A DNA stretch of 64,000 bases from Lepidodermella squamata (Eukaryota; Animalia; Gastrotricha), in the NCBI GenBank assembly GCA_047495785.1, contig JBLDXI010000002.1, positions 248,001 to 312,000 of the forward strand, written 5' to 3'. Shown piece after piece: positions 12,941 through 49,606 of the stretch. The position numbers and the translations under genes are program-made. The notes below the pieces were generated by a model, which was given only the letters and a program-made list of their open reading frames with translations, had not been told where the DNA came from and made no database searches. Position 1 is the first letter of the stretch. Every line of letters starts with the position of its first letter.

Positions 12941-12956
12941 TTGAGATGGGCTTTTT
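12941..12956 (-). promoter_or_regulatory. Family upstream motif (variant AAAAAGCCCATCTCAA on - strand)
   Basis: Ends ~52 nt upstream of the ATG at 12888, the same spacing as the + strand copies. Confidence 0.5.
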
Positions 12957-13252
12957 GAGAACGTTCAAACACTTAAATTACTCCACAAAACTTGAATTTT
13001 TCGAGTTTTATTCGGGCTCATTAAAATGCTCCATTCAATCACGAGTTCCCGAGTGAACAATACAGCTTTATGCTGCATTTGAGCTATTCCACTCCGAGTA
13101 CTCATTTTGCACAAATACTTACTAAAGCAAAACACAACGTTATTTGCGGCTTTTGAATAAAAGACAATGGCTAAGTCTTAGCGTAAAATGGCCAAATAAG
13201 TCTAACATTGCTTGAGTGGCATCTCGCTGCCTTTACGCATCACTGTGTTTAT

Positions 13253-15277
13253 ATGTCGCGTTTAACAACGTGTTGTAGTCGTTGCAGGTCAATTTTTCGC
13301 ATCTATTTAGCGAGATGTAGAAATATCAGACTTTTCTACCTGTTCATCGCTCTCGTCATCATATTGGCAATCTTTTTCATCGCAATCGGTATCAGAAATT
13401 CGACGAATAACAGCGAACAGCAGCAACATGTTGTAGCAACTACCATAAGCCCGGCTGAGAGACAGCGGCGAGTTGATGAAACCATGCGGCAGTTCAAATT
13501 TCCGGGCTGTCGAACATTAGAAAAATGGGCGCCGAATATGAACTTCATACAGCGATCGGCCGACACTGCCTGGGGACTATGGACTTTTTCGCATTATGAA
13601 ATCAATCGAATTGTACACTTTGTTTCGCTAGATCACCCAAAAGTCTTTAGTTTCAAGGTAAGTGAAAAATCAAAGAAAATACTGCTCTTATTTTCCTATT
13701 TTAAAGAATTTTTTGAGCCTGCTCAGTGCCATAAAATTTCTAGAACCCGACGAAATTTACATGCATTTCAATGCTGAACCAGTCATGGATGGCAGTTTGT
13801 ACAATCATTGGTGGCAAGAGGCCTTAGAAACAATCCCATTTTTGAACATCGTCTACAACAGCAATTATTCAACGGTTCAAAAACTGGCCAGAATAGAGCA
13901 ACAAGGCGGTGGTTTGGTAATACCATTAGAAGGAATCATATTCACTGGACAGGAGCTGAAAAATCCGCAACCTGAGGAAATATCAAAGGACAATATCGGT
14001 CAAGCTATTTCGACGCGATCGAAAATTTTGATGTTACTGCCCGGTATGTTACCAGGGTTTCTGGAATCCTTGAACCCGATCGCACCTTCAGGGGCCAAAG
14101 GGCTTAATTGCAAAAGCTACACCTCACAGCAACCCTTCACCGATCATCTACTCGATTTTTGTTATTCCATCAATCGTGACACTGAGGTCTATCCGAAGGA
14201 GTTCTTCTCCGGTTCTGATCAGTTTTCACAACTTGTTCGGTATTTGTTTTACGGATCGAAGCGAGAGATTGTACCAAGACCGGATGAAAGCCCTACTGGC
14301 AATGCGAAGGAGAAAGTTCCGCTGATTTGCCACTACATTTGGATCGAAGGGACTCCGCTGGAATTCGAAGCGTTCCTCAGCATGTTGAGCTGTTTGTTCA
14401 TCGTCAAGTAAGTAAAAAGGTTCATTGCATAACGAAAAATCTAAGTCATTGCTTTCAGAGCCGATGTTTACGTTCACGGAAGTTTGCCGCCGACCGGTAA
14501 AAGGTGGCGAAAATTACTCGCCCTGGGAGGTTCGAAGGTCCGCTACCTTGAAACTCAATTACCAACCAAAGTATTCCGGAATCCTGTTTCAGAGAGAGCT
14601 CACATCAGCGACGTTTGGCGAGTGGAAGCCCTCTTGCGATACGGTGGCATCTACCTGGATTGGGATGCCATTTTTGTGAAACCCTTGGATGACAAGATTC
14701 GGAGTCAAGAAGTTGTGTTGAGTTACGATGTAATGCCGTACAACCCGTATCCTAATATCATCAGCAATGGCGTAATGCTATCAAAATCGAACAGCTTCTA
14801 TTTCCGAGAAGTTCAGGTAACTTCTTCGGAAAATAGTTTGATGTTGTTTTGCTGATTTTTCACTTGTCATAGAGATCTATGAGATATTTCAATGCCATTC
14901 GAAATGACGATTACATCTTCCATGGCCTGCCTTATTTCTTCAACTCGCTAATGGCAACTTACAAAATCTACGAATGCTACCCGGAACGTGTTACAATCGA
15001 CCCGCATTTCCAGGCTATCTGCAACAACGGCCGATGCCATCCGACTTGGAAATCGAATTTTCTACAGGATGGAATTGATAATGAAGTCGATTGGCTGGGC
15101 GGTGAAGCTTATGCGCTACACAATACGTACCCGACGCCGCAGGAGTTTGTCAGTGAAAGCTACCTCGCATCGGCCAACCCATCGTCGCGGTACTATAAAA
15201 TTGCTATGAATGTGCTGAAGAACGCTAACTTGACTCTCTCTGATTTATCATCAACTTTCGGCATTAACTTATTTTAA
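13253..15277 (+). CDS. GT32 alpha-1,4-glycosyltransferase-like (A4GNT/A4GALT family), copy 1; 4 exons
   Basis: Type II TM; HISDVWRVEALLRYGGIYLDWD (DXD motif); ISNGVM. Introns 13658-13706, 14408-14458 and 14817-14872 are GT-AG and frame-consistent. Confidence 0.9.
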
Positions 15278-15328
15278 TAAAAATTTAGTTTTATCATTGA
15301 AAATACACCCGCTTGAGAGCTTTTTTTT

Positions 15329-15345
15329 AAAAAATTCTTCCTTAA
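15329..15345 (+). promoter_or_regulatory. Family upstream motif (AAAAAATTCTTCCTTAA)
   Basis: ~54 nt upstream of ATG 15400. Confidence 0.5.
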
Positions 15346-15399
15346 AACCTTTTCGGAGGCTGATCATTTCTCCTTCAACCCGATGTTGTGTAGTTCAAA

Positions 15400-16122
15400 A
15401 TGGGTAGGTGGCATAGAATGTTTGCCATTCTCAGCTCGTTCGCTCTACTTGGCTGTCAGATAATCGCATCGGAAGTAGAGCCGATCGACATGTCAGTTTT
15501 TGTCGATATGCCGCCTCGTGAAAGTTCGGTCGGTGCTAGATTACGAGCAGCTTCAGCCCTTATGGAAGGCTTCGTGGAAGACATAACCCCTCCGAAGCCT
15601 GTAACACCCCCAACAATTTATTCGCCTAAAATAAAGTTATTCCCAAAAATGCCGCCACGTGCTGAGTTGGAGCAGCCATTATTTAAGACTGGCTGGAGGA
15701 AAACTCTCGCTGTTGTCGGCAAAGTGGTTACGACAATCGCCGTGATTGCAGTTCTTACTGGTCTGACAGTTCTTTCTTTGAAAAAAGGCAGTAACCGGAA
15801 GGAAGAGAAGCCTGTTTATACCAATCGGTGGGCAGAAAGGGACAGGCTTGCTCGGCTTGAGCTGTTACGGACCTCAAATGCTGAAGGACGTATGGCCGAT
15901 GTGAGAGAGAAGCTTCCAGGGAGCATCATTTCGATCACATCATCAAAAAATAATATCATGCAGAAAATATGGCTTGGAAATGACGAGTTCATGGTGGAAA
16001 AACACTTTTTCCCAAATCCCGATCCAATTCAAGTAATGAGTGACGTTATCATTGCGTTTAGCAATATAATTGATTTGAGCTACGATTTTAGCGGCAACAA
16101 CTTATTCTCAGCAATTCTCTAA
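15400..16122 (+). CDS. Novel family member 2 (divergent)
   Basis: AILSSFALLGCQIIA signal, Pro-rich region, TM, then ERDRLARLELLR...EGR...N.E....FFPNP....D. Confidence 0.75.
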   Translation: MGRWHRMFAILSSFALLGCQIIASEVEPIDMSVFVDMPPRESSVGARLRAASALMEGFVEDITPPKPVTPPTIYSPKIKLFPKMPPRAELEQPLFKTGWRKTLAVVGKVVTTIAVIAVLTGLTVLSLKKGSNRKEEKPVYTNRWAERDRLARLELLRTSNAEGRMADVREKLPGSIISITSSKNNIMQKIWLGNDEFMVEKHFFPNPDPIQVMSDVIIAFSNIIDLSYDFSGNNLFSAIL

Positions 16123-16218
16123 AGGCCTTTCCAGTTTTGAGAAGTAATAAATAGCAGTTTGACCTTTGAGCTGACAGAATTGGCTTGACCCTTGAGCTAC
16201 TGCAATTTTAGACCTTTG

Positions 16219-16233
16219 AAAAACCCGCCTTAA
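16219..16233 (+). promoter_or_regulatory. Family upstream motif (AAAAACCCGCCTTAA), preceded by three (T/A)GACC(C/T)TTGA repeats
   Basis: 49 nt upstream of ATG 16283; the repeats are at ~16161, ~16187 and ~16210. Confidence 0.55.
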
Positions 16234-16282: not shown

Positions 16283-17302
16283 ATGTATTGCGTTGCTTTG
16301 GTTTTCTCTCACGCAATATTGTTTGATCAGATCTTCGGGGCGATCCTCGGAAGATTGCGTCGTCAGCTGGATTGGGGTGACCAGCCGCCTCTACAGCCTA
16401 TATCTGGGATTTCCTTATGGAGTGATTCAAGTCCCATGGCGCAGTACACTAAAGATTTGGTTCCCGAGGCTGTGGCGTACCAAAAGTTCCTATCTCAGGG
16501 AATACATGATGGTCCACTGAAAACCTCAAAGCAGTACTTCCCACCGGGTGGACGAACTGATGAGTACAAACGCACACAGCCGTCTTTCGGCCGGAATGTT
16601 CAAAACTTGCCAATCGCAGGAGCAGGCAATGATGGACCAGTGGCCCCGGCGAATTCGGCACTACAATCGCTACCAGGCAGCTCGAAAGAGAACCCGGCTG
16701 TACTTGAGGAGAATTTACTTTTCGGGGATTACGTGATAGACGAGAAACCTGTCGGTAGACCAACTCCTGAAATATCGATAATTCCTCGCGAGCCCGTTCA
16801 ACGAAAGATATCAAGCCTCGACTCACCTTTGTCTGACGCTGTTGGGCCTCTGAATAATGATGGGTCGAGAAAAGGCAAATCCTTCGCCGAAAAAGCGAAA
16901 TCATTTTGGCAGCGGAATAAACGTGGAATTCTAATTGCTGGCGCTATTTTCGCCGCAATAGCGGTCATTGGAATTGTTGCTGGTATCACGTATGCTCTAA
17001 CAAGTCGGCGGGAGAATTCGAACTCCCGTAGGATCATAGAAGGAAACGACAGACAGCTGAGAGCAGGCCTGTTAACTAGCGATCAAATTTTGGGGAGAGT
17101 TGCCCATGATGAACAGGGAACGCTGTACGGTCGCGTTGCTATGTTAATGGAAGCAAGCAGTTCGGTTACGGGATTGATCGCTTTGAATTACGATATTTTG
17201 AGAATTCGAGAGGTTTTGCCGGCTCCTACGTCAGAGGCAGCCTCAACGGATACTTTGATACGTTTTGAAATACGGAGTGATGCTGCTTATTCCACTTATT
17301 AA
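16283..17302 (+). CDS. Novel family member 3
   Basis: HAILFDQIFG, RLRR|Q, FWQRNKR+TM, DRQLRAGLL...LGRV...LYGRVAMLMEASS. Confidence 0.88.
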   Translation: MYCVALVFSHAILFDQIFGAILGRLRRQLDWGDQPPLQPISGISLWSDSSPMAQYTKDLVPEAVAYQKFLSQGIHDGPLKTSKQYFPPGGRTDEYKRTQPSFGRNVQNLPIAGAGNDGPVAPANSALQSLPGSSKENPAVLEENLLFGDYVIDEKPVGRPTPEISIIPREPVQRKISSLDSPLSDAVGPLNNDGSRKGKSFAEKAKSFWQRNKRGILIAGAIFAAIAVIGIVAGITYALTSRRENSNSRRIIEGNDRQLRAGLLTSDQILGRVAHDEQGTLYGRVAMLMEASSSVTGLIALNYDILRIREVLPAPTSEAASTDTLIRFEIRSDAAYSTY

Positions 17303-17713: not shown

Positions 17714-18601
17714 TCAGGCTCTCGGTGGGATCAGTAGTTTGCTGATGACAGGCCACAAAGTCTCGAAAAACAACATGGTACCCATGTCTCCCAAGTGCTG
17801 ACCATCAATGAAAAAATTATCGGATAGAGAATCAGTATTAGTATCCTCCAACACTCGCCTAGCTCCAGCTTTTGTTGCCACATCATGGAAATCGATGAAA
17901 GTAGCTCCGATCAGTTCTGCTGCCACCCGACTAGCTACAGCGTACAAATCAACCTTGGAATTCGAGCGGTTGGAATACGGCAATACCCATGGGTTAGATT
18001 TACAATAATCCGCCCACTGCCTCTCATCGATAGGCGGAGGTGAAACGATAATGATTCGACTCCCTGTTAACACATTTGAACTTTCAATTAGCGACCGTGA
18101 TAGATAAACCAAATTGTCGACAAAGCGATCGATGGGCACATTTAGCAGCGGCGTGTCTGCAGCATCGTTTGAGCCATACATTATAACAACGCCGATTAAA
18201 TAGCCCAATTCGTCGGTAATCGAGGCTAAAATCTTCTGCCAAATTTGTCGGGCAGCTTCTGTAGTGAAGCCAGAGAAGCCACGGTTAACAACATCGCATT
18301 GACCTTTAACTTTGTTGGCAAGCATGGCCGACCAACTAGGTTTTTGGGCGTTTGCTGTCCAAGATGCTGTGTGCGAATCGCCCAGAAGTAAGATCTTCGA
18401 CATCGGATGCGTTCCGATTAAGCTTTGATTCCTATGAAAATACGATAATTTCTTTTAGCTTTGTAGAAATCGTTTGCATCAAGCATTGTAATCAACATGC
18501 CTTATGGACTTGGCTTCAATTTCAGCTTCAATGGAGTGACCCAAGGCTACGGCATTGAGCGCCACGCATACAAATGCGCATACAAGCTTTGCCGACATCA
18601 T
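17714..18601 (-). CDS. Secreted SGNH/GDSL esterase (IAH1-like), copy 1; catalytic residues intact; 2 exons with a GC-AG intron
   Basis: Exon 1 (18601-18501) MMSAKLVCAFVCVALNAVALGHSIEA is a signal peptide. Intron 18500-18432 (GCATGT...TAG). Blocks LLGDS, NRGFSG, YGSND and DGQH. Confidence 0.85.
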
Positions 18602-19712
18602 TTCTGCGACGTGGAATTCGAAAATTCAAGCTAATTTGAAGTTCAAGATGGAACAAAACTACATCCTCCTACATCTCAGAGAGCTAAAAAAAACTCGGAA
18701 TATGTTTCACTACAAGAGGGGAATTAATTCAGCAAGGCATTACAGAGAGCGAGGTGGGACAGCAGAATAAGGCTAGGTTAAGGAAAATAGACGTTAAAGG
18801 CCCCGTTTTGGTCATTGATTGAATTCATCGTGCGGACTGATTGAACTGGTAGGGATGATTTAAATTCCGATTTTCTCATTTGACTTATTTGAACTCAAAT
18901 TTGTCTCTCATTCTTTGCCAGAGGCACGTGCCCGACTGTCGAGCTCATTAGTTTCATTCGCAACGTGTTCTTGACGTGAAAAGTTGGCTTTATTAAACAT
19001 GCGACAATTTTTAGTTCAGTTTGCTATCAAGGACAATAGACAATAGACAATTAAGTTATTGTCCAAAGTAGCAATTAAACACTCAATTCCAGGCAGAAAT
19101 TCGAATTTTTGAATTCGATCATTTGAATTTATAGCCAATCCGCTGCCGCTGGGGCATGTTATCATGAACAAATTTGAGAAATGAATGAGAAATGAAAAAT
19201 TTGCTGGGCTTTCAGAAAACGCAATATTAGATAGTCATAGACTATACCACGGTTTCAATTTAGCGTAATAACGTGTATAACGGAATGCGAAAAGGTGAAA
19301 CTACAAGTTCATTCATCGCGTGCGAATTGCCGGGTTCTCGGTTGAAATTAAAACTTCTTCTAATTAATTGTTTATAAAAATGAACATGACTTCAGTCTAC
19401 TTTGGCCTTTTGCTAGCACAGATTCAGATTCGGAAAATTAGGGTAATCGTTTCGCCTTGAGATTTTATTGACCGGCTGTTACTTCACAGGGTTTACATGC
19501 GTTTCAATTTAGTGTGCATTTATGAAGAAAATGATAACCAAATTTTTCGAAAAAGCATAACAGGAATTTTACATATTTTCCACTCAGCTGCGAACAATTG
19601 AAAAATCAATTTTGCCCGCAACGTCATTCAATTCTGATAAAGTAATAAAGCAAGGCATCAAACACAAAGTCATCGTAAATATTACAATTTATTTTCATTA
19701 ATTTGTATAGCA

Positions 19713-20571
19713 TTAGCTTCTCGGCGGAATAAATAATTTGCTGACCACAGGCCACAATGTCTCCAATAGCAAGGCTGTGCAAGTGTCACCGAGGTTCACG
19801 CCATCCTTGACCAACAACTCATTGGAAGCAGGATCAGTGGTATCCTCTAACTCTCGCCTAGCTTCAGCTATTGTCGCAACATCATGGAAATCGATGAAAG
19901 TAGCTCCGATCAGTTCTGCTGCCTTCCGACTAGCTCCGGCGTAGTAATTAATATTTGAATTCCACCGTTTGCAATTCAACATCGCCGGTTTGCACAAATA
20001 ATCCCCCCATAGCTTCTCATCTACCGGCGGAGGTGAAACGATAATGATTCGACTCGCTGTTAACACTTTCGAGCTTTCGAGCAACGACTGGGATAGATAA
20101 ACCAAATTGTCGACGAAGCGGTCGATAGGCACAGCCTGCCACATGGCGTCCGCAGCATCGTTTGCGGCAAACATGACAACAACACCAATTAGATTGCCCA
20201 ATTCGCTGTTAATTGAAGCTAGAATCTTCTGCCAACTTTGTCGAGCAGCTTCTGTGGTGAAACCGGATAAGCCGCGGTCGACTATCTCGCATTGCCCTTC
20301 AACTTTGTCGGCAAGCATGCCAGACAAACTTGGTTTAACGCTGTGTGCTGTCCAAGATGGTGATACGAGCGAATCGCCTAGAAGTAGGATCTTCGACATC
20401 GGACGCGTTCCGTTTATTCTTTGATTCCTGTAAAAATATGAGGAATTATTTTTAGATAAATCGCTTGTATTAAACATACCCTGTTGAGTTAGTTTCGAGC
20501 TGAGCTTCAACAGAGTGAGCCAAGGCTAGTGCCACGCACAGAAATTTGCCCAGAAGTTTTGCCGATCCCAT
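19713..20571 (-). CDS. Secreted SGNH/GDSL esterase-like (IAH1-like), copy 2; catalytic His replaced by Asn
   Basis: Exon 1 (20571-20480) MGSAKLLGKFLCVALALAHSVEA; GT-AG intron 20479-20428; LLGDS, DRGLSG, AAND, and DGVN instead of DGxH. Confidence 0.85.
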
Positions 20572-21460: not shown

Positions 21461-21475
21461 AAAAGTCCTCCTCAA
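21461..21475 (+). promoter_or_regulatory. Family upstream motif (AAAAGTCCTCCTCAA)
   Basis: 52 nt upstream of ATG 21528. Confidence 0.6.
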
Positions 21476-21527: not shown

Positions 21528-22631
21528 ATGCACATGATTGCTCTAGCTATAAGTTACTCAATTCTGATCGACCAAGCCTTCGGACATTTTGCAAGAGAGA
21601 TAATATATACTCGTCCTAAATCGTCGTCGATACGAGTTCGTCGCCAGCCTGGTCAATCTAATATTAATGCCCATCAGAATAGCTTGGATACAGATCTCCA
21701 GGCTGTTCGAGACTTTGTGGAAACAAGTCTCAGGTTGGAAAGAACACCTGCACCACCACTGCAACCAGCTCCAGGAACAAGACGGCGAGTAGTGACATTC
21801 CACGAAGATACCGTATTTCACACCGGCAGACCAGTAAGAAGGCCGTTGTCCGAGAGCCGATTCAACATACCGCCTAATCCACCGGCAGAAGGCCAAGTAC
21901 CGCCCCCTCCTCAGCAACAACCAGCGGCAGCACCAATAATTGTCACGATGAGCCCAGAGCAATTTCAGGAATTGTTTGGGATCGATGCTCAATCAATATC
22001 AAAGAGCGCACAAGAGAACGCGATAGAACTTGAAGAGGATTACCTTTTCGGCGATTATGTGGATCAAGGGAAACCTGTTGGAAAATCACAGCCGGAAATG
22101 TCGATAATTCCTCGTCAGCCCGTTCAACGAAAGATATCAAGCCTCGACTCACCTTTGGCTGACGCTGTTGGGCCTCTGAATAATGATGGGTCGAGTAAAG
22201 GCAATTCCTTCGCCCAAAAGGCGAAATCATTTTGGCAGCGGAATAAACGCGGAGTAAAAATTGCTGGCGCAGTGTTTGCCGCCTTAGCGGTCATTGGGAT
22301 TGTTGCTGGTATCACATATGCTCTAACAAGACAGCAGAAAATTTCGAATTCCCGTGAGAGCCTAGAAGGAAAAGACAGACGCCTGAGAGCAGGCCTGTTA
22401 ACTAGCGATCAAATGTTGGGGAGAGTTGGTTATGATGAACAGGGAACGCTGTACGGCCGCGTTGCCATGATAATGGAAGCAAGCAGTCCGGTTACATCAT
22501 TGGTCGCTCAGAACTTCGAGATTTTAAGAATCGGCGAGGTTTGGCCCGCTCCAACGTCAGAGGCAGCCTCAATGGATACTTTAATCAGATTTGAACCGAT
22601 TTCGATTGATGCTGCATATTCCACCTATTAA
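21528..22631 (+). CDS. Novel family member 4
   Basis: SYSILIDQAFG, RVRR|QP, Pro-rich region with RRVVTF; C-terminal half nearly identical to member 3. Confidence 0.88.
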   Translation: MHMIALAISYSILIDQAFGHFAREIIYTRPKSSSIRVRRQPGQSNINAHQNSLDTDLQAVRDFVETSLRLERTPAPPLQPAPGTRRRVVTFHEDTVFHTGRPVRRPLSESRFNIPPNPPAEGQVPPPPQQQPAAAPIIVTMSPEQFQELFGIDAQSISKSAQENAIELEEDYLFGDYVDQGKPVGKSQPEMSIIPRQPVQRKISSLDSPLADAVGPLNNDGSSKGNSFAQKAKSFWQRNKRGVKIAGAVFAALAVIGIVAGITYALTRQQKISNSRESLEGKDRRLRAGLLTSDQMLGRVGYDEQGTLYGRVAMIMEASSPVTSLVAQNFEILRIGEVWPAPTSEAASMDTLIRFEPISIDAAYSTY

Positions 22632-22760: not shown

Positions 22761-22871
22761 GGCGATGGAACTCTGTATGGCCGTGTTACCGTGGACATGC
22801 ATGCTAGCAACCCGATTGCAGCCTTAGTTTCGGAAAACTTTGAACTGCTGACGTTTCGAGACTTTTTCTAA
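22761..22871 (+). pseudogene. Relic of the family C-terminal domain
   Basis: Translates GDGTLYGRVTVDMHASNPIAALVSENFELLTFRDFF*; too short for the ORF track. Confidence 0.8.
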
Positions 22872-23059
22872 CAACAAACCCAGCTTCGGCTTTTCAGCTT
22901 GACAGTTTCAGCTTGAACACCAGCCGATTTTTACAAATTACCGAAATTTTTTATATTACAAAAAATGAATGACCCTAAAAATTCTGCCTTCATTTTAAAT
23001 ATCAATGTGAGGGAGAGGGCTAATTTCTTCAGTACCTATATATTAGCCTATTAAGTTGA

Positions 23060-24194: not shown

Positions 24195-24309
24195 TTGTCA
24201 ATGAATTATCATAACAAAGAATCGCTTGGAATCACCCTGTTTGCGAGCTTGTGGTGAATTTCATCCGAAGTGTAAAGCGTTTAAACAAAGCAAAACGGCT
24301 AGTGCTGTG

Positions 24310-24445
24310 AAAAGCCCTCCTTTATATATTATAATAGAAAATTCATTTCGATGGTGTAACTCCAGCTTTTTTGATTCGTTCAGCCGCTGTGATAATATCG
24401 TACGCAGCCCTACACTTTGCGCTTGGTGATTCAAGCTGGTAACCC
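24310..24445 (+). pseudogene. Family upstream motif followed by a decayed signal-peptide relic
   Basis: AAAAGCCCTCCTTTA (24310-24324), then SAAVIISYAAL, resembling the family signals SFGVILSYALL and IALAISYSIL. Confidence 0.4.
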
Positions 24446-37420: not shown

Positions 37421-37434
37421 AAAAGTCCACCTTA
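37421..37434 (+). promoter_or_regulatory. Family upstream motif (AAAAGTCCACCTTA)
   Basis: 48 nt upstream of ATG 37483. Confidence 0.65.
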
Positions 37435-37482
37435 GTATTAGTTGAACATCCTAATTTCAAATTTCTATTGTTTGATGCCACG

Positions 37483-38731: not shown

Positions 38732-38747
38732 AAAAGTTCCCCCTTAA
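38732..38747 (+). promoter_or_regulatory. Family upstream motif (AAAAGTTCCCCCTTAA)
   Basis: 64 nt upstream of ATG 38812. Confidence 0.6.
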
Positions 38748-38811: not shown

Positions 38812-40056
38812 ATGGTTTCTCGCAGAAGGCAAAGCATCGCCATTTTGGTGTCGTTCCTTGTGCTCACTGATCAATTTTTCGCTTCGGCTCTTAAGGCACA
38901 GCCAGTTCCAGGCCATGAAAACTCACCCCGATTGCACCGTCGAGCTGATCCTGATCCTGATTCCAATCCGTCGCGAGTAAGATTCACCCAGCCAATCTCG
39001 GCAGAAGCTAGCGTAGAGCCGGTGAGGAGCTTTCTTGAACGCGCTGGTGTAGCGGTATCCGGGCCGGAAGCCAGCTCTTCTAGCGTTCGATTTCGCCCGC
39101 CGAATCTTCAAATCGACCCCGCAGCGAATTTAGACGACATAGTCGGGCCTACTGATGGACTTCGACCAATTGCCGACCGCACTCCAACGCCCTATCCTAG
39201 GGGAGATGAACAAGGTCGGCCGAAAAAGTGGCGCCCACCAACTCCATTCCCCGGCGAAGAAGCTGCAAAGCCGCCGAAGAAGTGGCGCCCGCCAACTCCA
39301 TTCCCCGGCGAAGAAGCTGCAAAGCCCCCGAAGAAGTGGCGCCCTCCGACACCATTCCCCGGCGAAGAAGCTGCAAAGCCCCCGAAGAAGTGGCGCCCTC
39401 CGACACCATATCCGGGGGGACCAGATGCTGGGCCTGCAGATAACGCTGGCGGTTCCAATTCTCAACAAGTGTTCTTCGGACCGGATTTCGAAATGCCCGA
39501 AGCAGGTGAGCAATCGCAACCAGAAGCTCAAAGCCCTGGGTCTCCTCAAAACTCACCTGATAGAAGCCTGGTTCCGTCAAATGCCGGCCCACTTGCAACC
39601 ACTGGATCAAGGCGTAACACGTTGCCGGCCTTTAATTATCGACCAGTTCTAGCCGGTATGGTTATTGGTGCTTTTCTCACAGTAATTGCTGCAGCCTTCG
39701 CATATTCGATCGTGAATGTAGTAAAAAGATTTGTGAATGATGAAAAGAAGGATCCCAGTGATGACATGGCTGAGAAGGATCGACTTGTCAGGGTTGATTT
39801 GCTGAAAGGCGGTGATCAAGCTCTGGGGCGCGTTTCTGCAAATACTGACGATGTTTACGGCCGAGCAACTGTCATCATGCAAGCCAGCAAGCCTATTCAA
39901 CAAGTAATTGGTGCTAATTTCGAATACCTCTCGATGCCGTATCTCTGGCCCAGGCCTACGGACTTGGAGGCGAGAAGTGATCAATTCGCTAAGATTGGAG
40001 ATGGCCTAGTGGCAAGTGACTACATCACAGAGGCATTAGAATTGCTCTACGTCTAA
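38812..40056 (+). CDS. Novel family member 8, with an 18-aa tandem repeat
   Basis: LVLTDQFFA, RLHRR|A, RVRF, (PKKWRPPTPFPGEEAAKP)n, TM, VYGRATVIMQASKP...WPRPT. Confidence 0.9.
   Translation: MVSRRRQSIAILVSFLVLTDQFFASALKAQPVPGHENSPRLHRRADPDPDSNPSRVRFTQPISAEASVEPVRSFLERAGVAVSGPEASSSSVRFRPPNLQIDPAANLDDIVGPTDGLRPIADRTPTPYPRGDEQGRPKKWRPPTPFPGEEAAKPPKKWRPPTPFPGEEAAKPPKKWRPPTPFPGEEAAKPPKKWRPPTPYPGGPDAGPADNAGGSNSQQVFFGPDFEMPEAGEQSQPEAQSPGSPQNSPDRSLVPSNAGPLATTGSRRNTLPAFNYRPVLAGMVIGAFLTVIAAAFAYSIVNVVKRFVNDEKKDPSDDMAEKDRLVRVDLLKGGDQALGRVSANTDDVYGRATVIMQASKPIQQVIGANFEYLSMPYLWPRPTDLEARSDQFAKIGDGLVASDYITEALELLYV
39220..39417 (+). repeat. 54-bp coding tandem repeat, ~3.7 units
   Basis: Unit CCGAAGAAGTGGCGCCCNCCNACNCCATTCCCCGGCGAAGAAGCTGCAAAGCCN; differences between units are mostly synonymous. 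Confidence 0.95.
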
Positions 40057-40768
40057 TGTAATTCGAGTTTGAAGCATAACTAATAAAAACGTTGGAATTG
40101 TTTTTTTCTACTTCATCCTGTCCAGTTCAAGATTACGGTCATTAGGACGATTCCGGAATTTTGTCAGTGCAGTGTTATTTCATTTTGATGAATTTCAGAT
40201 CGCGCTTTTGAGCAGTGTTACTTATCGATCCTGGCTACAAGAATTTGAAACAATCAGACCACCATCCCAGACCGTTATGGTCATTTTAAAACAGGTAAGC
40301 GAGGTCATAGACCATCAATTTCTCTACGACCAAGGTGTGTAATTTTGATTTTTTTCCAAGTTGAAATCGAGGTAACCCCGTTTACCCATCATGTTCAGCA
40401 AAACATACTATCCCGCATATTTTCGTTGACTTTTGTGTCAATTTTATCAGCTTTTGAGATTTGAGTCAGTGTCCTCGAACAGTCGCCGTATATCAGCTGG
40501 GATAGTGTGATTTCGACTATTTTCCGAACAATCTTTAGAAACAAGCAAGTTTCAAAATCGGGATCAGGAAACCCAATAGAAATGCTGTCAAATATTTTTT
40601 TCCAGATCGGCTATGAAAGGATTAAGCTTTGTTGAGAGAAAAACAATTTAAAAAAATCCACCTTTACAGATTGATTCTCAAAGGATTCATTCCCGAGAGG
40701 GACGAAAGAAGCCTCTTCGCTTCTATTGCGACCCGGGTGGAGCGTAGCAGCTTAAATAACTTTCTTCT

Positions 40769-41719
40769 ATGGAGCTTTGCATGAAGATGATTTCTCCTAG
40801 AAAGAAGACTATTGCGCTTGTTATTTCGATAGCCGTTCTCAGCGATCAAATTTTCACATCCGCCCTTCAAGCCAAGCTGCTGAATAGATCATCTCGCCTT
40901 AATCGACGCGCTGTGTACGAAAAGTTCAGCGATCTGCCGCCATGGGGCCAGCAGGACCTTCGAAATCGTAGGTTAGCCGCCATTAAGCGATACCTCGAGA
41001 ATCGGGGCGTTCCGGTTTCTGGACCTAATGCAGCATCCGCTCCCTCTACTCGAGGCCGAGGTCGGCCATTACGTGTAAACACGAATGCTAGAGTAACGAC
41101 TTTGGGTGACTTGATGGGCCCAACGGACGGGCTTCAGCCTCTGGTTGACCTGGCTTCAATGGCATCCGATGTTTCGTTGCTACCTGGGCGAGGAATAGTC
41201 GCTCTTGCTAACTTACCAGGAAGCTCAATCTCTCGCCCCAACTCTCCAGTAAGGTCCGATTTGCAAAGATCAAAAGTTGCGGCCACTTTATCATGGAATA
41301 GTGAACTAGTAGTTGCGGGTGTTGTCATCGCTGGAATCATTGCATTTACCATAGCGGCTATTGGCTATGAATGGCTGCAAGCGCATAATTCAAAAATAAA
41401 GAAGCTAGAAGATCGGGTTGCTGAGCAGGATAGGAAAAAACGACTTGACAAGCTGGGTTGGGGCGGACGTTATGACGTATATGGGCGAACTGCTTCTGCT
41501 GAAGATATCGACAGCGTTTACGGCCGTGTAACAGTTATCATGCAAGCGAGCAAGCCGATTCAGCATATGGTTGGCGAAAACTTCGATGCTCTTTCGATGC
41601 CTGTAATCTGGCCCTGTCCGACTAATCGTGAGTCAGTGAACGATCAGTTTTTGAAAATTGGCAATACCTTGAGAGATAGCGATTACGTCATCAAAGAAAT
41701 TGAATCCCTCTACATTTGA
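40769..41719 (+). CDS. Novel family member 9
   Basis: IAVLSDQIFT, RLNRR|A, LMGPTDGLQP, TM, VYGRVTVIMQASKP...WPCPT. Motif AAAAATCCACCTTTA at ~40652-40666. Confidence 0.88.
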   Translation: MELCMKMISPRKKTIALVISIAVLSDQIFTSALQAKLLNRSSRLNRRAVYEKFSDLPPWGQQDLRNRRLAAIKRYLENRGVPVSGPNAASAPSTRGRGRPLRVNTNARVTTLGDLMGPTDGLQPLVDLASMASDVSLLPGRGIVALANLPGSSISRPNSPVRSDLQRSKVAATLSWNSELVVAGVVIAGIIAFTIAAIGYEWLQAHNSKIKKLEDRVAEQDRKKRLDKLGWGGRYDVYGRTASAEDIDSVYGRVTVIMQASKPIQHMVGENFDALSMPVIWPCPTNRESVNDQFLKIGNTLRDSDYVIKEIESLYI

Positions 41720-41772: not shown

Positions 41773-41787
41773 AAAAGTCCCCCTTAA
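41773..41787 (+). promoter_or_regulatory. Family upstream motif (AAAAGTCCCCCTTAA)
   Basis: 47 nt upstream of ATG 41835. Confidence 0.65.
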
Positions 41788-41834: not shown

Positions 41835-42722
41835 ATGGCTATGGGGCGAAAACTGAATGGCTACATTGCTTTCTTCCTCTCATTGATAGTGCTGAATGAT
41901 GAAGTCTTTGCTTTATCCCTGAATCTTCGGTCACGGCACCCCCGAAGTGAAACCCTGACTCTGACAATATCCCAACAGGACCAAGCGTTTAATTCGATAC
42001 GAAGCAGCATTTCACAGCGTCAGAAAGCGTTTTCGTCACCAGGCCAACGACTCGGCTCAGACCTCAGTTTAGTTCCTCCCTCTTCAAAGGAGTATGGCGT
42101 AGACCGGCTGGCTAACATCTTAGCCCCACCAGAGCAGCAAGTTCCTGTTATGCCAGATTCGAAATTTCTCATGGCCTCTTCGAAGCTTAATGCCAAAGTC
42201 TCGCCGGGGTTCCCTGGTCCAGAACATCCATCGCCAAATCAGATGACGCAAAACTTGGCAGATTCCGGATCGAAGTCTGTCGGATTCTCAAGTTCTGTCA
42301 GGAATTTCTGGTCGAAATACAAAAAAGATATTATCCTCGTCGGAGTAGGAATAGTGGCGGTGATAGCATTCGTTGCATGGCGTGTTGCGACTTCAGTGAT
42401 CACAAGAGAAATTAATGATAAGGATCGAAAAGATCGTCTGCGGAGAAAGTACATAAATGGAGACGAACCACTGGTTAATGGATCGTTGTTCGATGAGGAT
42501 AGGTTGCTCAGCAAGATGACTGGAGTATTTGGCAGCAGTCCGGTTTTAGGGAGAGCGATCCTAGATAATTTTGACTATCTTCGAATCAAAGACACCTGGA
42601 TCAGCCCGAACGAAGCTACGATTGGAAACGAGCAATTTTGGACTGTCGACTCAAGTTTCGATTCGAAACAGTACAGTGTAGTGGATGATTTACAACAAGG
42701 AATTTTCACAACCATAGAATAA
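41835..42722 (+). CDS. Novel family member 10
   Basis: LIVLNDEVFA, RHPR|S, FWSKYKK+TM, KDRLRRKYI...KMTGVFGSSP...NFDYLRIKDTW. The ORF-track start at 41700 overlaps the previous gene, so the true start is probably 41835. Confidence 0.85.
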   Translation: MAMGRKLNGYIAFFLSLIVLNDEVFALSLNLRSRHPRSETLTLTISQQDQAFNSIRSSISQRQKAFSSPGQRLGSDLSLVPPSSKEYGVDRLANILAPPEQQVPVMPDSKFLMASSKLNAKVSPGFPGPEHPSPNQMTQNLADSGSKSVGFSSSVRNFWSKYKKDIILVGVGIVAVIAFVAWRVATSVITREINDKDRKDRLRRKYINGDEPLVNGSLFDEDRLLSKMTGVFGSSPVLGRAILDNFDYLRIKDTWISPNEATIGNEQFWTVDSSFDSKQYSVVDDLQQGIFTTIE

Positions 42723-43004: not shown

Positions 43005-43019
43005 AAAAGTCCCTCTTAA
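43005..43019 (+). promoter_or_regulatory. Family upstream motif (AAAAGTCCCTCTTAA)
   Basis: 53 nt upstream of ATG 43073. Confidence 0.65.
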
Positions 43020-43072: not shown

Positions 43073-44008
43073 ATGAATGGTAAACTTCACCGCAGTTACG
43101 CGCCACTCATTTCAGTGCTGCTCTTGAACGAACAAATCTATGCCGTAATTATCAATGCCGTCATTCCGATTAAGACGCGCATACTTTATCGCCGACAGCC
43201 AGCTGGAGCATATGAAGCCCCGCCGCCGTCGTATGAAGCTACTATGAACGGGATACGGATGAGCATCCGTCAAAGACTTGAGCGCCTTCAATTAGCACTT
43301 GATAATCCACCGCATGGCAATGCCCAATTACTACCAGGTCAATTGCGTCCATTAACTGTAGTTACCCCACCGCCCTACCCTGGGACCGCTGGAGGAAATA
43401 ATTTGGGCAACGTCGTAGGGCCTGCTGAGCAGCAGATTCCAATTATGCCGCATTTTCCAAGGCTTGGTGATCGACAGAGTGCGCCTCCGTTACCAACTGA
43501 GCCGCCGCCCTCTTATGAAAGCCTGTCAAAACCTCGATTCACTGATCGCGTGAAGAAATTCTGGGCAGAACATAAAGGCAAGATAAAAGTTGTGGCAATA
43601 GCCTTCGTGGTGTTGCTGAGTTCTATTGGACTTGGAATTTTGTTTGGTCACCTATTCAAGGACAAAAGCGAACCTACGCCGATAACTCCAGTGGTTCCCT
43701 CTAATAAGATCCAGAGTAAGGGCGAGGATGATAGGAAATTGAGAACGAAGTACCTATTGGGCCAAGATGAGCTGCTTGGCAGATCGAGCTTTGGCGCGGC
43801 GGAATTTTACGGAAAAATGACTGGATTGATAACGGGCAGTCCCCTTATTAGCTCTGGGGTTCTTGAAAATTTCGATTATCTTCGAGTCAAGGATACATGG
43901 CTATGTTTGAATGAATCAGTCGTGCAAATTGATATTCTGTTGAGATTGGATGGTGGGTTATTTTCAGATGACTACAGCACTCAAGATGACGCGATAAATG
44001 ATATTTGA
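43073..44008 (+). CDS. Novel family member 11, with three PPxY motifs
   Basis: LLLNEQIYA, LYRR|QP, PPPSY/PPPY/PPPSY, FWAEHKGK+TM, FYGKMTGLITGSP...NFDYLRVKDTW. Confidence 0.88.
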   Translation: MNGKLHRSYAPLISVLLLNEQIYAVIINAVIPIKTRILYRRQPAGAYEAPPPSYEATMNGIRMSIRQRLERLQLALDNPPHGNAQLLPGQLRPLTVVTPPPYPGTAGGNNLGNVVGPAEQQIPIMPHFPRLGDRQSAPPLPTEPPPSYESLSKPRFTDRVKKFWAEHKGKIKVVAIAFVVLLSSIGLGILFGHLFKDKSEPTPITPVVPSNKIQSKGEDDRKLRTKYLLGQDELLGRSSFGAAEFYGKMTGLITGSPLISSGVLENFDYLRVKDTWLCLNESVVQIDILLRLDGGLFSDDYSTQDDAINDI

Positions 44009-44760: not shown

Positions 44761-44775
44761 AAAAATCCTTCTTAA
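44761..44775 (+). promoter_or_regulatory. Family upstream motif (AAAAATCCTTCTTAA)
   Basis: 45 nt upstream of ATG 44821. Confidence 0.6.
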
Positions 44776-44820: not shown

Positions 44821-45825
44821 ATGAATTGCCGCCAACTCTTCCCGGATGATTCCTGTCCCCTTATAATACTTGCTCTTCTAAATTTACTGATCCATGGATA
44901 TGCGGAAGATTCTTATTCACGAAAGCATGTCGGATCAAATGGCAAACTACTCCGTCGGCCGCGGGGTTTATCTTCGGCCGCCTTTTCAGCCGGGTCCTCC
45001 GGACTGTACTTCACACTCAAATTATACGACTGGTATCACAACAGAAATAGGGCTCCACCAGCGTTAGAGTCTTCTCCTTCCAACTCAGTTCGTATCCCCG
45101 CAAATTATGCTGACCGAAATCTTTATGACCCACTGGTTAATCCCTTTTACGGCCCGCAACTCTCGCCCGCCCCGGATAATAAGCAGTATGACTGGGCCGC
45201 GTTAAGAGCAACGATGCATGAATCTGATTTAGATCCGTTGTATTACGCTGTTGAGAGGACTGACGATATCAAGCCGATAATTCCAGAGAAAATCGTGGAA
45301 TACCCAACCCCGGCAAGTCCTCCAATGGCCCAACCGATTCCAGAGAGCAAACCGACTTCATTCAACGTCCCCGTGGTTGATAAGCCGCCGAAATCGTTTT
45401 GGTCGCGTCATGGGGAAAAAATACTATTGGCAGGTGCTGTTTTCGTATCCCTTCTAGTATTCTCGGCCATAGGATACGGCCTCAGTAAAGCAATTAAAAC
45501 TCTAAAGCAGGATAAAGAAGCCAGGCAAATCATGGATGAAGAAATGAAAAAACTCGATAGAAACACGAGAGCCGCTTTGCTGACTGGTAGCAATGGCGTG
45601 GAGGGGCGCTCTTCTGATCAGGATTTCGACTACATTTACGGCCGCGTGACAGTCATTTTACAAGCAAGTCGACCTGTTGAATCGCTGATTGCTGAAAACA
45701 TTGAAATTGTATGGCGCCCGCAACCATGGCCATCGCCGGATGCTGCAACAGTACAGGGTGATACATTTCATCAAATTGTGAAAGGAGTGAGTCTAGAAGA
45801 CTATGCTGTATCAAATTTTGAATGA
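44821..45825 (+). CDS. Novel family member 12
   Basis: Signal peptide, RRPR|G, NPFY, FWSRHGEK+TM, DRNTRAALL...EGR...IYGRVTVILQASRP...WPSP. Confidence 0.88.
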   Translation: MNCRQLFPDDSCPLIILALLNLLIHGYAEDSYSRKHVGSNGKLLRRPRGLSSAAFSAGSSGLYFTLKLYDWYHNRNRAPPALESSPSNSVRIPANYADRNLYDPLVNPFYGPQLSPAPDNKQYDWAALRATMHESDLDPLYYAVERTDDIKPIIPEKIVEYPTPASPPMAQPIPESKPTSFNVPVVDKPPKSFWSRHGEKILLAGAVFVSLLVFSAIGYGLSKAIKTLKQDKEARQIMDEEMKKLDRNTRAALLTGSNGVEGRSSDQDFDYIYGRVTVILQASRPVESLIAENIEIVWRPQPWPSPDAATVQGDTFHQIVKGVSLEDYAVSNFE

Positions 45826-46009
45826 GAAACGCAATTGTGAATGCGCGATGAATAAAAACAATGAATTGGTTATAGGCGCGTTATATGAATAGGCGTTACA
45901 CGCAGGTGAGGTCACGCGCTATTGATGCGCGGTGTCTCATTCAGAAAGTGCGCCTCAATAATGCCACACGCCTACTGTTCACAATGCGCACATGCATTGT
46001 TTGAAAATT

Positions 46010-46408
46010 ATGTCTTGGCTTGTTCGCTTAGCGAGGAAAAATTTCAGAAATTTTGTTCTCGGTGCGCTACTATCTGTAGCGTTGTCAACTATTGTTTTGG
46101 TCACGATTTATATTCCTCCGTACCGCGGTAATCCGATCACATATGAAGAGCACAGACAACAAATGGCGGAAGCGCGGAGGCAGTTTAAGTTCATCGGCTG
46201 CGGGACGCTCGATCGATCGAGTGCTAATATTACGAAAACAAGACCGCTGGACACGGTTTGGGGCAGTTGGCTGTTTGAAAATTACAACCTCAAAAGAATG
46301 GTTCATTTTGTTGCGACTGAAAGCCCCATCACATTCACATTCAAGGTAATTTCATTAACACAAAACTTCATCTTTAAATTAGGATAATTATATTTCCTAA
46401 ATTTATTA

Positions 46409-46444
<36 letters not shown>

Positions 46445-48129
46445 AGAATTATTTGCCTACAAAAATTAACTCATCGATTAAAATAACTGTAATTCATAAA
46501 TACAACTAATTTTACAGAATTTCCTGAGCGTGCTAAGTGCGCAGCGGTTTCTCGAGCCAGATCAAATAATCATACACCTGAAATCCGAACCGGAGCCGGA
46601 TTTGAGCAGCTATCACCATTGGTGGCAAGAAGCGCAAGAGACCATACCTTTTCTAGTCGTTAATTACTACACCGGATTGTCGCTCTCTCAATTGCTGGTG
46701 AATATTCAGAATGGCGGCGGAGGTATTATCGTCCCGCTTTCTGGCATTATTTTCACTGGCGGAGAACCTGTCGTCTCGCGAATGGTCGACTTGGGTTCAG
46801 TCAATAATCTTTTTTCAAGAAAAGATTCAGTTTTTCTAACCCACCCGGGTACATTACCGGGCGCGCTCGAAATTTTGAACCCTCTAAGTTATACATCAAT
46901 CAAAAAGTAATTGAACTTCTCTTGAAGTTTTCCTATGCTTCATCTGTTACTCCTTTGATAGGGTCGCATGCGAAGATTATAAATCTGTTGGTGCGAAAAT
47001 GGGATTCTGTTTCTTTTTCAACCCCGAAAAGGAGCTGTATCCACGGGATTTCATGACCGCTGATGACCAAATTTCTGGGCTGGCACGGTACTTGTTCTAC
47101 GGGAATCGACTGCAAATCGCTGCTCAACCAAGCCCTGGAAAAATACCTCTCATCTGCCACTACATATGGATCAACGGTACACCGCTAGAGTTCGAAGCTT
47201 TTCTTAGCATGCTCAGCTGCTTGTACATTGCTGGGTAAGTCCGTCCTACATTTGCCAGTTTTGCCAGTACATTCGATTTGCCAGTTTTTTACTCGTCATA
47301 TTTTCAGGGCTGATGTTTACGTGCATGGAAGTTTACCGCCCTCTGGCAAGCGATGGGTGAAACTCAATGAATTGGCCGGTTCCAGGGTTCGATACATTGA
47401 AACTCAACTTCCGACCTCTGTCTTCGGAAATCCCGTGACAGAACGAGCCCACATCAGCGATGTCTGGCGAGTTGAGGCCTTATTGCGATACGGTGGGATC
47501 TACCTGGACTGGGACGCGTTTGTCGTGAAACCCTTAGACGACCGAATTAGAAGCTATGATGCAGTACTAGCCTTTGATGTAATGTCTTACCCAGACTACC
47601 CTAATATCATCAGCAATGGCGTCATGATTGCAAAACCAAACTCCTTCTACTTCAGACAAGTTCAGGTAAGTACAGAGCTTTGACCGAATCGTAAAATTAT
47701 GTCGAATTTTGTTAACAGAAATCTATGAGATATTTCAGAGCTGAGCAGACTGAGTTTACGGGTAAAGGCCTGCCTTACTTCTACAACTCTCTTTTCGTGA
47801 CCTACAAAGTGTACGAATGCTATCCCGACCATGTGCTAATCGACCCTCATCTCCAAGCAATCTGCAATAAAGGTCGTTGCCATCCAACGTGGAAAGACAA
47901 CTATCTAGTCGATGAGATCGATACGCCAGTCGATTGGATGGGTGGCGAAGCGCATTTCTTGCACAACACCTATCCTACCCCAAATGAATTCTATAGCGAG
48001 AGTTACTTGGCAAACGCGAAGAATCACAGCTCACCATATTACAAAATCGCAATGAAAATCCTGAAGAGTGCTAATTTAACACTTGCTGAGCTCAATTACT
48101 CACATTCAGGTCTTAGCATTGACCAATAA
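46010..48129 (+). CDS. GT32 alpha-1,4-glycosyltransferase-like, copy 2; 5 exons
   Basis: Identical HISDVWRVEALLRYGGIYLDWD. Three introns are shared with copy 1, plus an extra intron at 46907-46961. Start is 46010 or 45992. Confidence 0.9.
46414..46442. repeat. (ATT)n microsatellite in intron 1 of GT32 copy 2
   Basis: About nine ATT units. Confidence 0.9.
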
Positions 48130-48137
48130 AAAAATGT

Positions 48138-48152
48138 AAAAGTCCACCTTGA
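48138..48152 (+). promoter_or_regulatory. Family upstream motif (AAAAGTCCACCTTGA)
   Basis: 46 nt upstream of ATG 48199 and only 8 nt after the GT32 stop codon. Confidence 0.65.
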
Positions 48153-48198
48153 ATTTTAAACCCGTGGGATATTTTTCCGAAGTGAAATCGTGGCTACG

Positions 48199-49439
48199 AT
48201 GACAGCTGCGAAAAGCTTTGGTGTCATACTCTCTTATGCTTTGCTGATAGATCAAATTTTCTGTTGGGCTATTCGCGGCTATCATCCGCGCAGAAAAAGA
48301 CAGCCAGACTTCCTTGATAGCGATAGTTCGAGTTCAGATGAATCCGGCTATTCGACAGATAGCGATAACGTATTTTTCAATGCACGAGTTCGTGGCGTAT
48401 ATGAAGGCATAGAATTCCCTCTTATGGATGCGCCGAGAGAAGGTGCTGAGCGATTCCTCAAGGAGCCACGATTGTCAAAAAAGTATCCTGGAATTGGTGC
48501 ACCAATGCCAGTCGTAAAACCGCCATTCATATTCAATGCTCCGCCTCCTGGGAGACGGCAGCGGCAGCGTGGTCCTATTAGGCTGCCAGGTGCGCCAGAT
48601 TTTGACCCGCCACCTATTCCCAATAATAGACCTATCAGGCTACCAGGGGCTCCTGACTACGACCCGCCGCCAATTCCTAATGTCCCACCGTGGAGACCCG
48701 ATAATTCCCTCAACTAGCGATCGACGCCGTTAGTCAGGCGGAAATCAACCCACAGGAAAGAAATTTAGCTGATCAACTTTTCGGAGCAAATGCCCAAGCC
48801 CAACCTGAGAGGGGCCAACCTGTAAGGCAACCTCAGGGCGAATTTGAAATGAAGCCAATCCCAGGACCACCATCATTGGAAGATCAATTTGCACCAAGAG
48901 CTACTGCCAATCAGGTTTTCGGAGCGAATTCGCAAGCGAATCCTGATGAGAGGGGCGTGGTGAGAAAGCCAGATAACTCAGTTCAAATCGAATTGGAACC
49001 TTTACCACGCCCGAATGAAGTTAGAAAGCCGGATGAAGTTCGCCCTGCAGTTCCTATTCGGAATGGTGTCCGGCAAAGGATGAGGTACTGGAGGCCGTTC
49101 GTAGCCGCAGCAGTTGTGGGGGTTCTTGTAATCGCGACTGTTATTGGTCTGGCAATTTATTTATCGTCTAACAGTGATAAGAACGATTTCAAAGATCGGA
49201 ATCTGAGAGCTGAATTCCTGTCAGAAAAAATGGGAAATAGGATCGAGGGCCGAAACACCGCGGAGGACGTTAATAGCCGGATAGCAAAAGTGTTTGAAAC
49301 CAGCAAACCTGTTGTGGCGATGTGGCGGGGAAATATGGATGTTTTATTCGCAGTTTCGAGTCTGCCCAATCCAACAAAAGAATTAGCAGCTGGAGATACT
49401 TTCAATGCGCTAGACAATTTTAGTGATTACGATCTTTGA
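48199..49439 (+). pseudogene. Novel family member 13, split by a single-base frameshift at ~48705 (pseudogene, soluble variant or assembly error)
   Basis: The 5' ORF (YALLIDQIFC, RRKR|QP) ends at 48717. The -1 frame is open from 48705 (FPQLAIDAVSQ...) through the TM and KDRNLRAEFL...EGR to 49439. Confidence 0.75.
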
Positions 49440-49590
49440 AGGTGTGTGAGGCAATGAAAAAGCAAACAGCAATAAAAGATATAGGGTACTGTATTTCAAT
49501 GAGATAGACATAAATTAATGGAAATCCATATACGATACAACAGTCCTTCCTTTTATTTACACAGGTGTCTACGGCAAGCAAGAAATCTCA

Positions 49591-49606
49591 AAAAATACCA
49601 CCTTAA
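49591..49606 (+). promoter_or_regulatory. Family upstream motif (AAAAATACCACCTTAA)
   Basis: 44 nt upstream of ATG 49651. Confidence 0.6.

Follow-up and report, generated by a model that had tools for sequence, protein, structure and literature searches.

A conserved 15-nucleotide motif upstream of an orphan gene family in the gastrotrich Lepidodermella squamata

What keeps a 15-nucleotide (nt) sequence recognizable before 14 related genes when the DNA around it has diverged to randomness? The question is raised by a 64-kb stretch of the genome of the gastrotrich Lepidodermella squamata (contig JBLDXI010000002.1, positions 248,001 to 312,000; hereafter the window, with coordinates counted from its first base), in which 14 intronless genes of one tandem family are spread over positions 12211 to 50748, between recognizable genes. 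An initial annotation had described a short motif at a near-fixed distance from the start codons of these genes and had proposed that it coregulates the family. The motif is best read as a cis element that is dedicated to the family and that belongs to the gene directly downstream.

The motif, its copies, and its constraint

The motif is an asymmetric sequence of 15 nt, AAAA[G/A/T]TCCNCCTTAA. All 15 sites listed in the initial annotation were recovered, each within 0 to 2 nt of where it had been placed. Across these sites, the AAA, C7, C11, and T12 are invariant, and A4, C8, C10, T13, and A15 are nearly so; T6 and A14 are weaker (11 of 15 sites each), position 5 is G, A, or T, and position 9 is free. 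Per-column information is approximately zero outside the 15 nt, and the five positions directly 3′ of the motif are 76% A/T.

The consensus as first written has an exact match at one site only. With up to two mismatches allowed, the window contains 15 matches, versus an expectation of 1.35 ± 1.10, and none of 100 shuffles reaches 15. Thirteen of these matches are listed sites, and the other two lie on the minus strand at 10499 and 11319; the listed sites at 12941 (minus strand) and 22978 each have more than two mismatches to the consensus and were recovered only with a position weight matrix for which the 15 listed sites served as input. At a matrix score of ≥16, there are 16 matches in the window, as opposed to the 0.22 (exact) to 0.34 (simulated) expected. 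The best score in the window below this group is 12.6, leaving a clean gap under the threshold, and the leave-one-out scores of the 15 sites range from 12.9 to 21.6.

One copy, in the sense orientation, precedes each of the 14 family genes that have an N-terminus. The gaps between motif and ATG reported in the initial annotation were reproduced: the motif ends 44 to 54 nt before the ATG in 11 of the 14 members, within a full range of 23 to 102 nt. The copy of member 1 (12211 to 12888, minus strand) is AAAAGCCCATCTCAA at 12941 to 12955 on the minus strand, 52 nt before the ATG (score, 17.2); all other copies named here for family members are on the plus strand. AAAATTCTTCCTTAA (15331 to 15345) lies 53 nt past the stop codon of a GT32-like gene and 54 nt before the ATG of member 2 (15400 to 16122), AAAAACCCGCCTTAA (16219 to 16233) lies 49 nt before that of member 3 (16283 to 17302), and AAAAGTCCTCCTCAA (21461 to 21475) lies 52 nt before that of member 4 (21528 to 22631), whose SGNH neighbor (19713 to 20510) is on the opposite strand. 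The weakest copy, AAAATTCTGCCTTCA (22978 to 22992; score, 16.1; leave-one-out score, 12.9), stands 67 nt before the ATG of member 5 (23060 to 24204), a broken gene. For member 6 (ending at 37079), the distance from AAAAATCTTCCTGAA (36115 to 36129) is 23 nt if the ATG is at 36153 and 47 nt if it is at 36177. Members 7 (37483 to 38601), 8 (38812 to 40056), and 9 (40769 to 41719) are preceded by AAAAGTCCACCTTAG (37421 to 37435), AAAGTTCCCCCTTAA (38733 to 38747), and AAAAATCCACCTTTA (40652 to 40666) at 47, 64, and 102 nt, respectively. The sole exact match to the consensus, AAAAGTCCCCCTTAA (41773 to 41787), is found 47 nt before the ATG of member 10 (41835 to 42722), in an intergenic space of 115 nt in all. 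The remaining copies are AAAAGTCCCTCTTAA (43005 to 43019), 53 nt before member 11 (43073 to 44008); AAAAATCCTTCTTAA (44761 to 44775), 45 nt before member 12 (44821 to 45825); AAAAGTCCACCTTGA (48138 to 48152), which starts 8 nt past the stop codon of a GT32-like gene and ends 46 nt before member 13 (48199 to 48717 plus 48849 to 49439); and AAAATACCACCTTAA (49592 to 49606), 44 nt before member 14 (49651 to 50748).

The neutral yardstick for these sequences was provided by 4-fold degenerate third positions at residues that are identical in the aligned tails of the family proteins. Identity at such sites is 63% within a young trio of paralogues (members 3, 4, and 5) and 26.5%, i.e., fully saturated, among the paralogues outside this trio. 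When anchored on the motif, flanking blocks of 15 nt are 25 to 31% identical on both sides, out to 45 nt. The pairwise identity of the motif itself is 75.6%, well above the neutral level of the same sequences, and the observation that it is kept while the surrounding DNA has become unalignable thus stands. Because a conserved island of 15 bp in 14 genes sits in randomized DNA, the motif is, by this comparison of paralogues, under purifying selection. The weakest copy is that of the broken member 5, as expected if the constraint depends on a working gene.

Within the window, the motif is specific to the family. Seven nonfamily starts were scored, five belonging to recognizable genes (a GT10 fucosyltransferase, an SGNH hydrolase, two class C G protein-coupled receptors [GPCRs], and the GT32-like gene at 45992) and two to open reading frames (ORFs) at 804 and, on the minus strand, 4599. 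None of the seven has a sense motif scoring above 10 within 300 nt upstream, versus 14 of 14 family members. The best sense score is at most 0.8 upstream of the GT10, SGNH, and GPCR starts and at most 4.0 upstream of six of the seven; the exception is the GT32-like gene at 45992, where a weak look-alike scoring 10.0 precedes the ATG by 33 nt. These scores agree with the reported absence of the motif before glycosyltransferase, SGNH, and GPCR genes. Antisense matrix scores do not exceed 7.

The motif keeps its place with respect to the gene downstream, because its distance from the stop codon of the upstream gene varies from 8 to 752 nt whereas its distance from the ATG is tight. It also follows gene orientation, as had been noted for the inverted member 1: both this gene, upstream of which a GT32-like gene at 13208 runs the opposite way, and member 4 have a divergent rather than a same-strand upstream neighbor, and both keep the motif at 52 nt. 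Behind close same-strand genes, the gaps from stop codon to ATG are 69, 115, 122, 160, and 176 nt. In members 13, 10, and 2, the motif lies 8 to 53 nt past the preceding stop, within intergenic spaces of 69 to 122 nt. At member 13, the upstream GT32-like gene has its AATAAA overlapping the stop codon, and the motif follows that codon by 8 nt. Consequently, either the 3′ end of the upstream gene and the promoter of the downstream gene must overlap or the pair is cotranscribed. In combination, specificity, orientation, spacing from the ATG, and purifying selection are best read as the marks of a family-dedicated cis-regulatory element.

Two matches fall outside this pattern. The remaining listed site, AAAAGCCCTCCTTTA at 24310 to 24324 on the plus strand (score, 19.2), is an orphan copy with TATATATTATAA directly after it: no ORF lies behind it (ATG GTG TAA), no frame contains family-like sequence, and tblastn gave no match downstream. 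Farther downstream are a GTGAGT donor (24619) and, 7 nt ahead of the ATG of the GPCR gene (25110), a good acceptor, tctttcacag. The copy was considered as a promoter of this GPCR gene, 786 nt downstream, through a 5′ intron (donor, 24619; acceptor, 25102). Against that role, the putative leader holds many ATGs, and the two GPCR paralogues scored or scanned have no sense upstream copy at a score of ≥8. The orphan copy could be the relic of a lost member, the promoter of a noncoding RNA, or part of an alternative 5′ exon of the GPCR gene. The sixteenth match at a score of ≥16, at 11319 on the minus strand, is antisense within the GT10 codons for the conserved IKVDFY. As a hidden family member it was discarded, with no ORF behind it and a location inside the fucosyltransferase coding sequence, and it fits the chance expectation.

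Possible functions of the element

Probably, the motif is a family-specific, orientation- and position-locked proximal promoter site, the predicted double-stranded-DNA site of one sequence-specific factor. A DNA-binding protein would recognize the asymmetric 15-bp site and recruit or position RNA polymerase II for the gene directly downstream; initiation would fall between the motif and the ATG, and the family genes would thereby be switched on together. A site of 15 bp with one free position at its center would suit recognition by a multi-zinc-finger or bipartite protein. The CTTAA of the motif and the next five positions (76% A/T) might constitute a weak TATA-like site, and if the A/T-rich stretch from the TTAA onward acts in this way, initiation would be expected some 20 to 35 bp downstream. 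The compactness of the genome places a copy of the motif sometimes only 8 to 53 bp past the previous stop codon, and there the motif would be essentially the sole conserved information for starting transcription; intergenic spaces of 69 to 122 bp fit a promoter reduced to one dedicated element.

Searches of the family promoters returned little besides the motif. Enumeration of k-mers yielded no second family-wide word, no further positional signal or initiator-like word was detected within 40 nt upstream or 60 nt downstream of the motif, and TATAWAW occurs within 150 nt upstream in only 1 of the 14 family promoters.

Whether the motif goes further and sets the start site, as a true core-promoter element would, is rather doubtful. 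A particular form of this idea, drawn by analogy with SNAPc and small nuclear RNA (snRNA) genes, is a TATA-less core promoter dedicated to the family, in which a lineage-specific factor on the 15-bp word would fix polymerase II initiation at a set distance; we regard it as unlikely. Were it true, autonomous promoters of about 60 bp could sit right after the previous stop codon, even as internal promoters in operon-like clusters.

Several points weigh against a proximal promoter site. The motif stands farther from the ATG in three members (64, 67, and 102 nt), the good copy at 24310 precedes no gene, and the family specificity of the motif has been shown for one 64-kb window. The motif could also lie inside the transcript: an ordinary activator site would not usually be so strictly oriented and spaced, a signal at the RNA level would account for these features just as well, and the members that lie 69 to 176 nt behind a same-strand gene could be transcribed from upstream.

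Two specific kinds of transcribed element were tried and rejected. Read as coding sequence or as part of an upstream ORF, one frame of the motif gives Lys-Ser/Asn-Pro-Pro-stop, with the free position at the wobble base of Pro/Leu. This reading fails, in that there is no variation at the remaining third positions (AAA, CCT), the stop is missing from 6 of the 15 copies, and the peptides encoded upstream show neither conservation nor an initiating ATG. As a structured RNA element, the interval from motif to ATG has a mean folding z score of −0.5, and the motif pairs with varying partners or with none.

The RNA-level alternative in its broader form places the motif in the 5′ untranslated region or in a short outron, where it would act either as the site of an RNA-binding protein (affecting translation, stability, or localization) or as an enhancer of spliced-leader addition before the ATG. 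An RNA signal would be expected to keep strict sense orientation and a near-fixed distance to the ATG, as the motif does. ATG triplets are also mildly scarce between motif and start, with none, by eye, in about 9 of the 14 intervals when about 42% would be expected to lack them, and most members have, within about 20 nt of the ATG, AG dinucleotides that could accept a leader. The number of AGs, however, is not above chance (about 0.7 per 20 nt), and two members lack an AG near the ATG: that of member 7, its only one, is 41 nt upstream, and there is none in member 14. In member 3, an ATG lies 3 nt after the motif and would, with the motif transcribed, open an upstream ORF in the leader. Moreover, secondary structure is not conserved, the motif is not U-rich, unlike known trans-splicing elements, and a general processing signal should not be limited to one gene family. 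An RNA-level signal is the leading alternative, though distinctly unlikely.

A promoter site dedicated to the family must also be set against a general core-promoter or housekeeping word, or the word of a regulon that extends far beyond the family, which would look family specific only in a window dominated by the family. The small number of nonfamily starts in the window (seven scored), the look-alike before the GT32-like gene at 45992, and the existence of the orphan copy at 24310 without a family gene are compatible with such a word. Yet the GT10, SGNH, and two class C GPCR genes and the ORFs at 804 and 4599 (minus strand) have best sense scores of no more than 4.0 within 300 nt upstream, and outside the family region a score of ≥16 is reached only at one antisense site, which is compatible with chance. 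A general word is a quite improbable source of the pattern.

The close succession of several members behind same-strand genes (69 to 176 nt from stop codon to ATG), together with the motif that follows the AATAAA-overlapped stop codon upstream of member 13 by 8 nt, might instead point to the upstream gene, for which the motif would be a termination or cleavage signal or an operon spacer for polycistronic processing. But an element of this kind, such as the Ur-type intercistronic element of nematode operons, should stand between same-strand genes of one transcription unit at a set distance from the 3′ end of the upstream gene, and it is the distance to the ATG that is constrained while that from the upstream stop codon or poly(A) signal to the motif is not (8 to 752 nt); members 1 and 4 have no same-strand upstream gene at all. 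In addition, the GT32-like gene that begins 166 nt after member 12 lacks a good copy, and the motif was not found after the ends of nonfamily genes. An intercistronic or 3′-end function is highly improbable. The possibility that the motif is a nonfunctional leftover, whether inherited with the duplicated unit, homogenized by gene conversion, or derived from the end of a mobile element, is next to negligible: the members are tandem duplicates, and the motif certainly descends from one ancestral copy, but neutral identity in the same sequences is random (26.5% at 4-fold sites and 25 to 31% in the flanks, versus 75.6% in the motif), a 15-bp conversion tract in each of 14 genes is implausible, and there is no repeat structure or flank similarity around the motif, inspection by eye giving no hint of a gapped alignment of the flanks at high identity.

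The gene family and its neighbors

The family proteins share a layout: a signal peptide, in most cases with a dibasic RxxRRQ site; a proline-rich region of variable sequence; a single transmembrane helix; and a conserved cytoplasmic tail with the pattern DR..R..LL...GR...LYGRVTVIxQASxP...NFDxL...WPxPT...DYS. Their identity to member 9 is only 19 to 46%. No Pfam model matched them. A word-based search of proteins, for which the query was the conserved C-terminal part of member 9, returned no relative from a collection that evidently lacks this genome, the window's own proteins also not being returned, and the same is true of a 14-sequence profile run against 1.84 billion representative proteins, which gave zero matches and likewise did not return the window's own proteins. 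A scan of metagenome contigs gave 17 pattern matches, none of them a relative, and a look-up in the Atlas gave nothing usable. The AlphaFold model of the conserved tail is of low confidence (predicted local distance difference test [pLDDT], 64; predicted template modeling score [pTM], 0.27).

Two members depart from a single intact frame. In member 5, the frame changes after 23257 and an in-frame stop codon occupies 23530 to 23532; member 13 is split over two frames at 48717/48849 without a convincing intron. Each is either a pseudogene or the product of an assembly error. A piece of the conserved C-terminal domain of the family stands alone at 22767 to 22898 on the plus strand, after member 4 and ahead of the motif of member 5; with tblastn E values down to 1e−6, it is a relic of a further family copy. 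Tandem repeats occur in two members: in member 8, a 54-nt unit at 39220 to 39409 is present in 3.5 near-perfect (95%) copies that encode KKWRPPTPFPGEEAAKPP, and member 13 contains a 57-nt repeat at 48574 to 48681. Such repeats indicate a recent expansion within the proline-rich ectodomain. Each GT32-type gene copy has a family member downstream (member 2 at 122 nt and member 13 at 69 nt), and a unit of glycosyltransferase plus family member may have been duplicated together.

The window has a G+C content of 40 to 50%, in agreement with the 43% of the published L. squamata assembly (PMC11660948), and its genes are very compact. Recognizable genes were assigned by Pfam. They include a GT10 fucosyltransferase (10409 to 11857), two SGNH hydrolases on the minus strand (17714 to 20510, one of them at 19713 to 20510), and three tandem, essentially intronless class C GPCR-like genes on the plus strand (25110 to 35976), each with an ANF-receptor domain and seven transmembrane helices; the middle one is split into two ORFs (29348 to 30337 and 30379 to 31641). 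There are two multiexon GT32-type (DXD; PF04488) glycosyltransferases with short introns (13208 to 15277 and 45992 to 48129). A large polycystin-1-like gene on the minus strand (51410 to 61237) has PKD, REJ, GPS, PLAT, polycystin, and channel domains; its introns are very short (about 38 to 58 nt, plus one of about 400 nt), start with GTAAGT, and have at their ends weak WYAG acceptors that no polypyrimidine tract precedes. Beyond it, C-type lectin ORFs lie on the same strand (61649 to 63931). At the other end of the window, a 327-amino-acid ORF on the plus strand (804 to 1787) has no Pfam match at an E value of ≤0.01; its C-terminal part contains, by eye, a GIY-YIG-like stretch (YIGMTEKHLHQRVEQH), and it may be a fragment of a Penelope-like retroelement. 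Rfam gave no match anywhere in the window.

Comparison with known systems

Shared promoter words before paralogous genes are already a familiar phenomenon, and the value of the present one is practical rather than conceptual, in a phylum with almost no regulatory biology. It supplies a selection-validated 15-bp element, in which four blocks are invariant and one position is free and which is fixed in orientation and spacing; this element marks every member of an orphan family that has no relative in the searches made here. The motif could serve as bait for its binding factor and, with a position filter, could delimit the family genome-wide and flag coregulated nonfamily genes. Its use to find further members, as suggested in the initial annotation, would work only with a filter on both position and orientation, because chance alone, at approximately 1.7e−6 per position and strand, gives about 3.4 matches per Mb on both strands at a score of ≥16. 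As a promoter, it would show how little DNA is needed in a compact genome, one copy starting 8 bp past the preceding stop codon.

The clustered, intronless msp genes of Caenorhabditis elegans share a promoter motif that is bound by ELT-1 (PMC5942854). As in the present case, a common motif precedes the short intronless genes of a clustered multigene family, and there it is bound by one transcription factor. The msp motif marks genes expressed together, as the present motif would. The present motif, however, is unrelated in sequence and lacks a GATA core. Whereas msp paralogues are nearly identical, the proteins encoded here are only 19 to 46% identical and the surrounding DNA is saturated.

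The X-box of nematode ciliary genes, bound by RFX/DAF-19, has a preferred position of −50 to −200 bp from the ATG (PMC1794439). It resembles the motif in being a usually single element of 13 to 15 nt near the start codon in a compact genome, and it predicts further targets. The X-box is an imperfect palindrome that works in either orientation before functionally related, nonhomologous genes; in contrast, the present motif is asymmetric, is always in sense, has tighter spacing, and has so far been found only before paralogues. The X-box consensus GTHNYY AT RRNAAC has no match in the family promoters or anywhere in the window.

The initial annotation had likened the motif to the promoter boxes of gland-cell effector genes, and the likeness holds only at the level of concept. 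The DOG box, Mel-DOG, and STATAWAARS are short words tied to the secreted gland-cell effectors of plant-parasitic nematodes (PMC8158474). In both cases, a lineage-specific noncoding word marks genes for signal-peptide-bearing proteins and helps to predict more of them. But gland boxes are 6 to 10 nt long, are defined by promoter enrichment, and have a known tissue, whereas the present motif is 15 nt long, single copy, and position locked, before membrane-anchored paralogues of a nonparasitic animal that is not a nematode. The family proteins, with a signal peptide, a transmembrane helix, and a cytoplasmic tail in an animal genome, do not have the makeup of secreted pharyngeal-gland effectors. 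Nor are the words themselves enriched: in the 150 nt upstream of the 14 members, on both strands, ATGCCA, TGCMCTT, and STATAWAARS occur 2, 1, and 0 times, versus the 1.44, 0.43, and 0.07 expected from their rate in the window. More broadly, none of the consensus sequences for DOG, Mel-DOG, STATAWAARS, X-box, NF-κB, Krüppel, and GLI fits the motif. The NF-κB/Rel consensus GGGRNWYYCC is present on either strand in 1 of the 14 promoters; the reverse complement of the motif, TTAAGGNGGAYTTTT, is κB-like in some copies only, without a second half-site, and its variable position falls where κB sites are fixed.

The remaining comparison is with elements read by basal factors: the TATA box, which TBP reads at about −30, some 25 to 35 bp upstream of the transcription start site, and the snRNA-gene proximal sequence element, which SNAPc reads at about −55. 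These elements are general or class-wide, whereas the motif precedes one family; its invariant part (AAA, C7, C11, and T12) is not TATA-like, and 13 of the 14 promoters are without TATAWAW. What the motif has in common with them is a fixed orientation and, as measured to the ATG, a near-fixed distance, together with a 3′ end that is possibly weakly TATA-like. Should initiation occur at a constant offset from the motif, the family would provide a clean example of a gene-family-specific core promoter.

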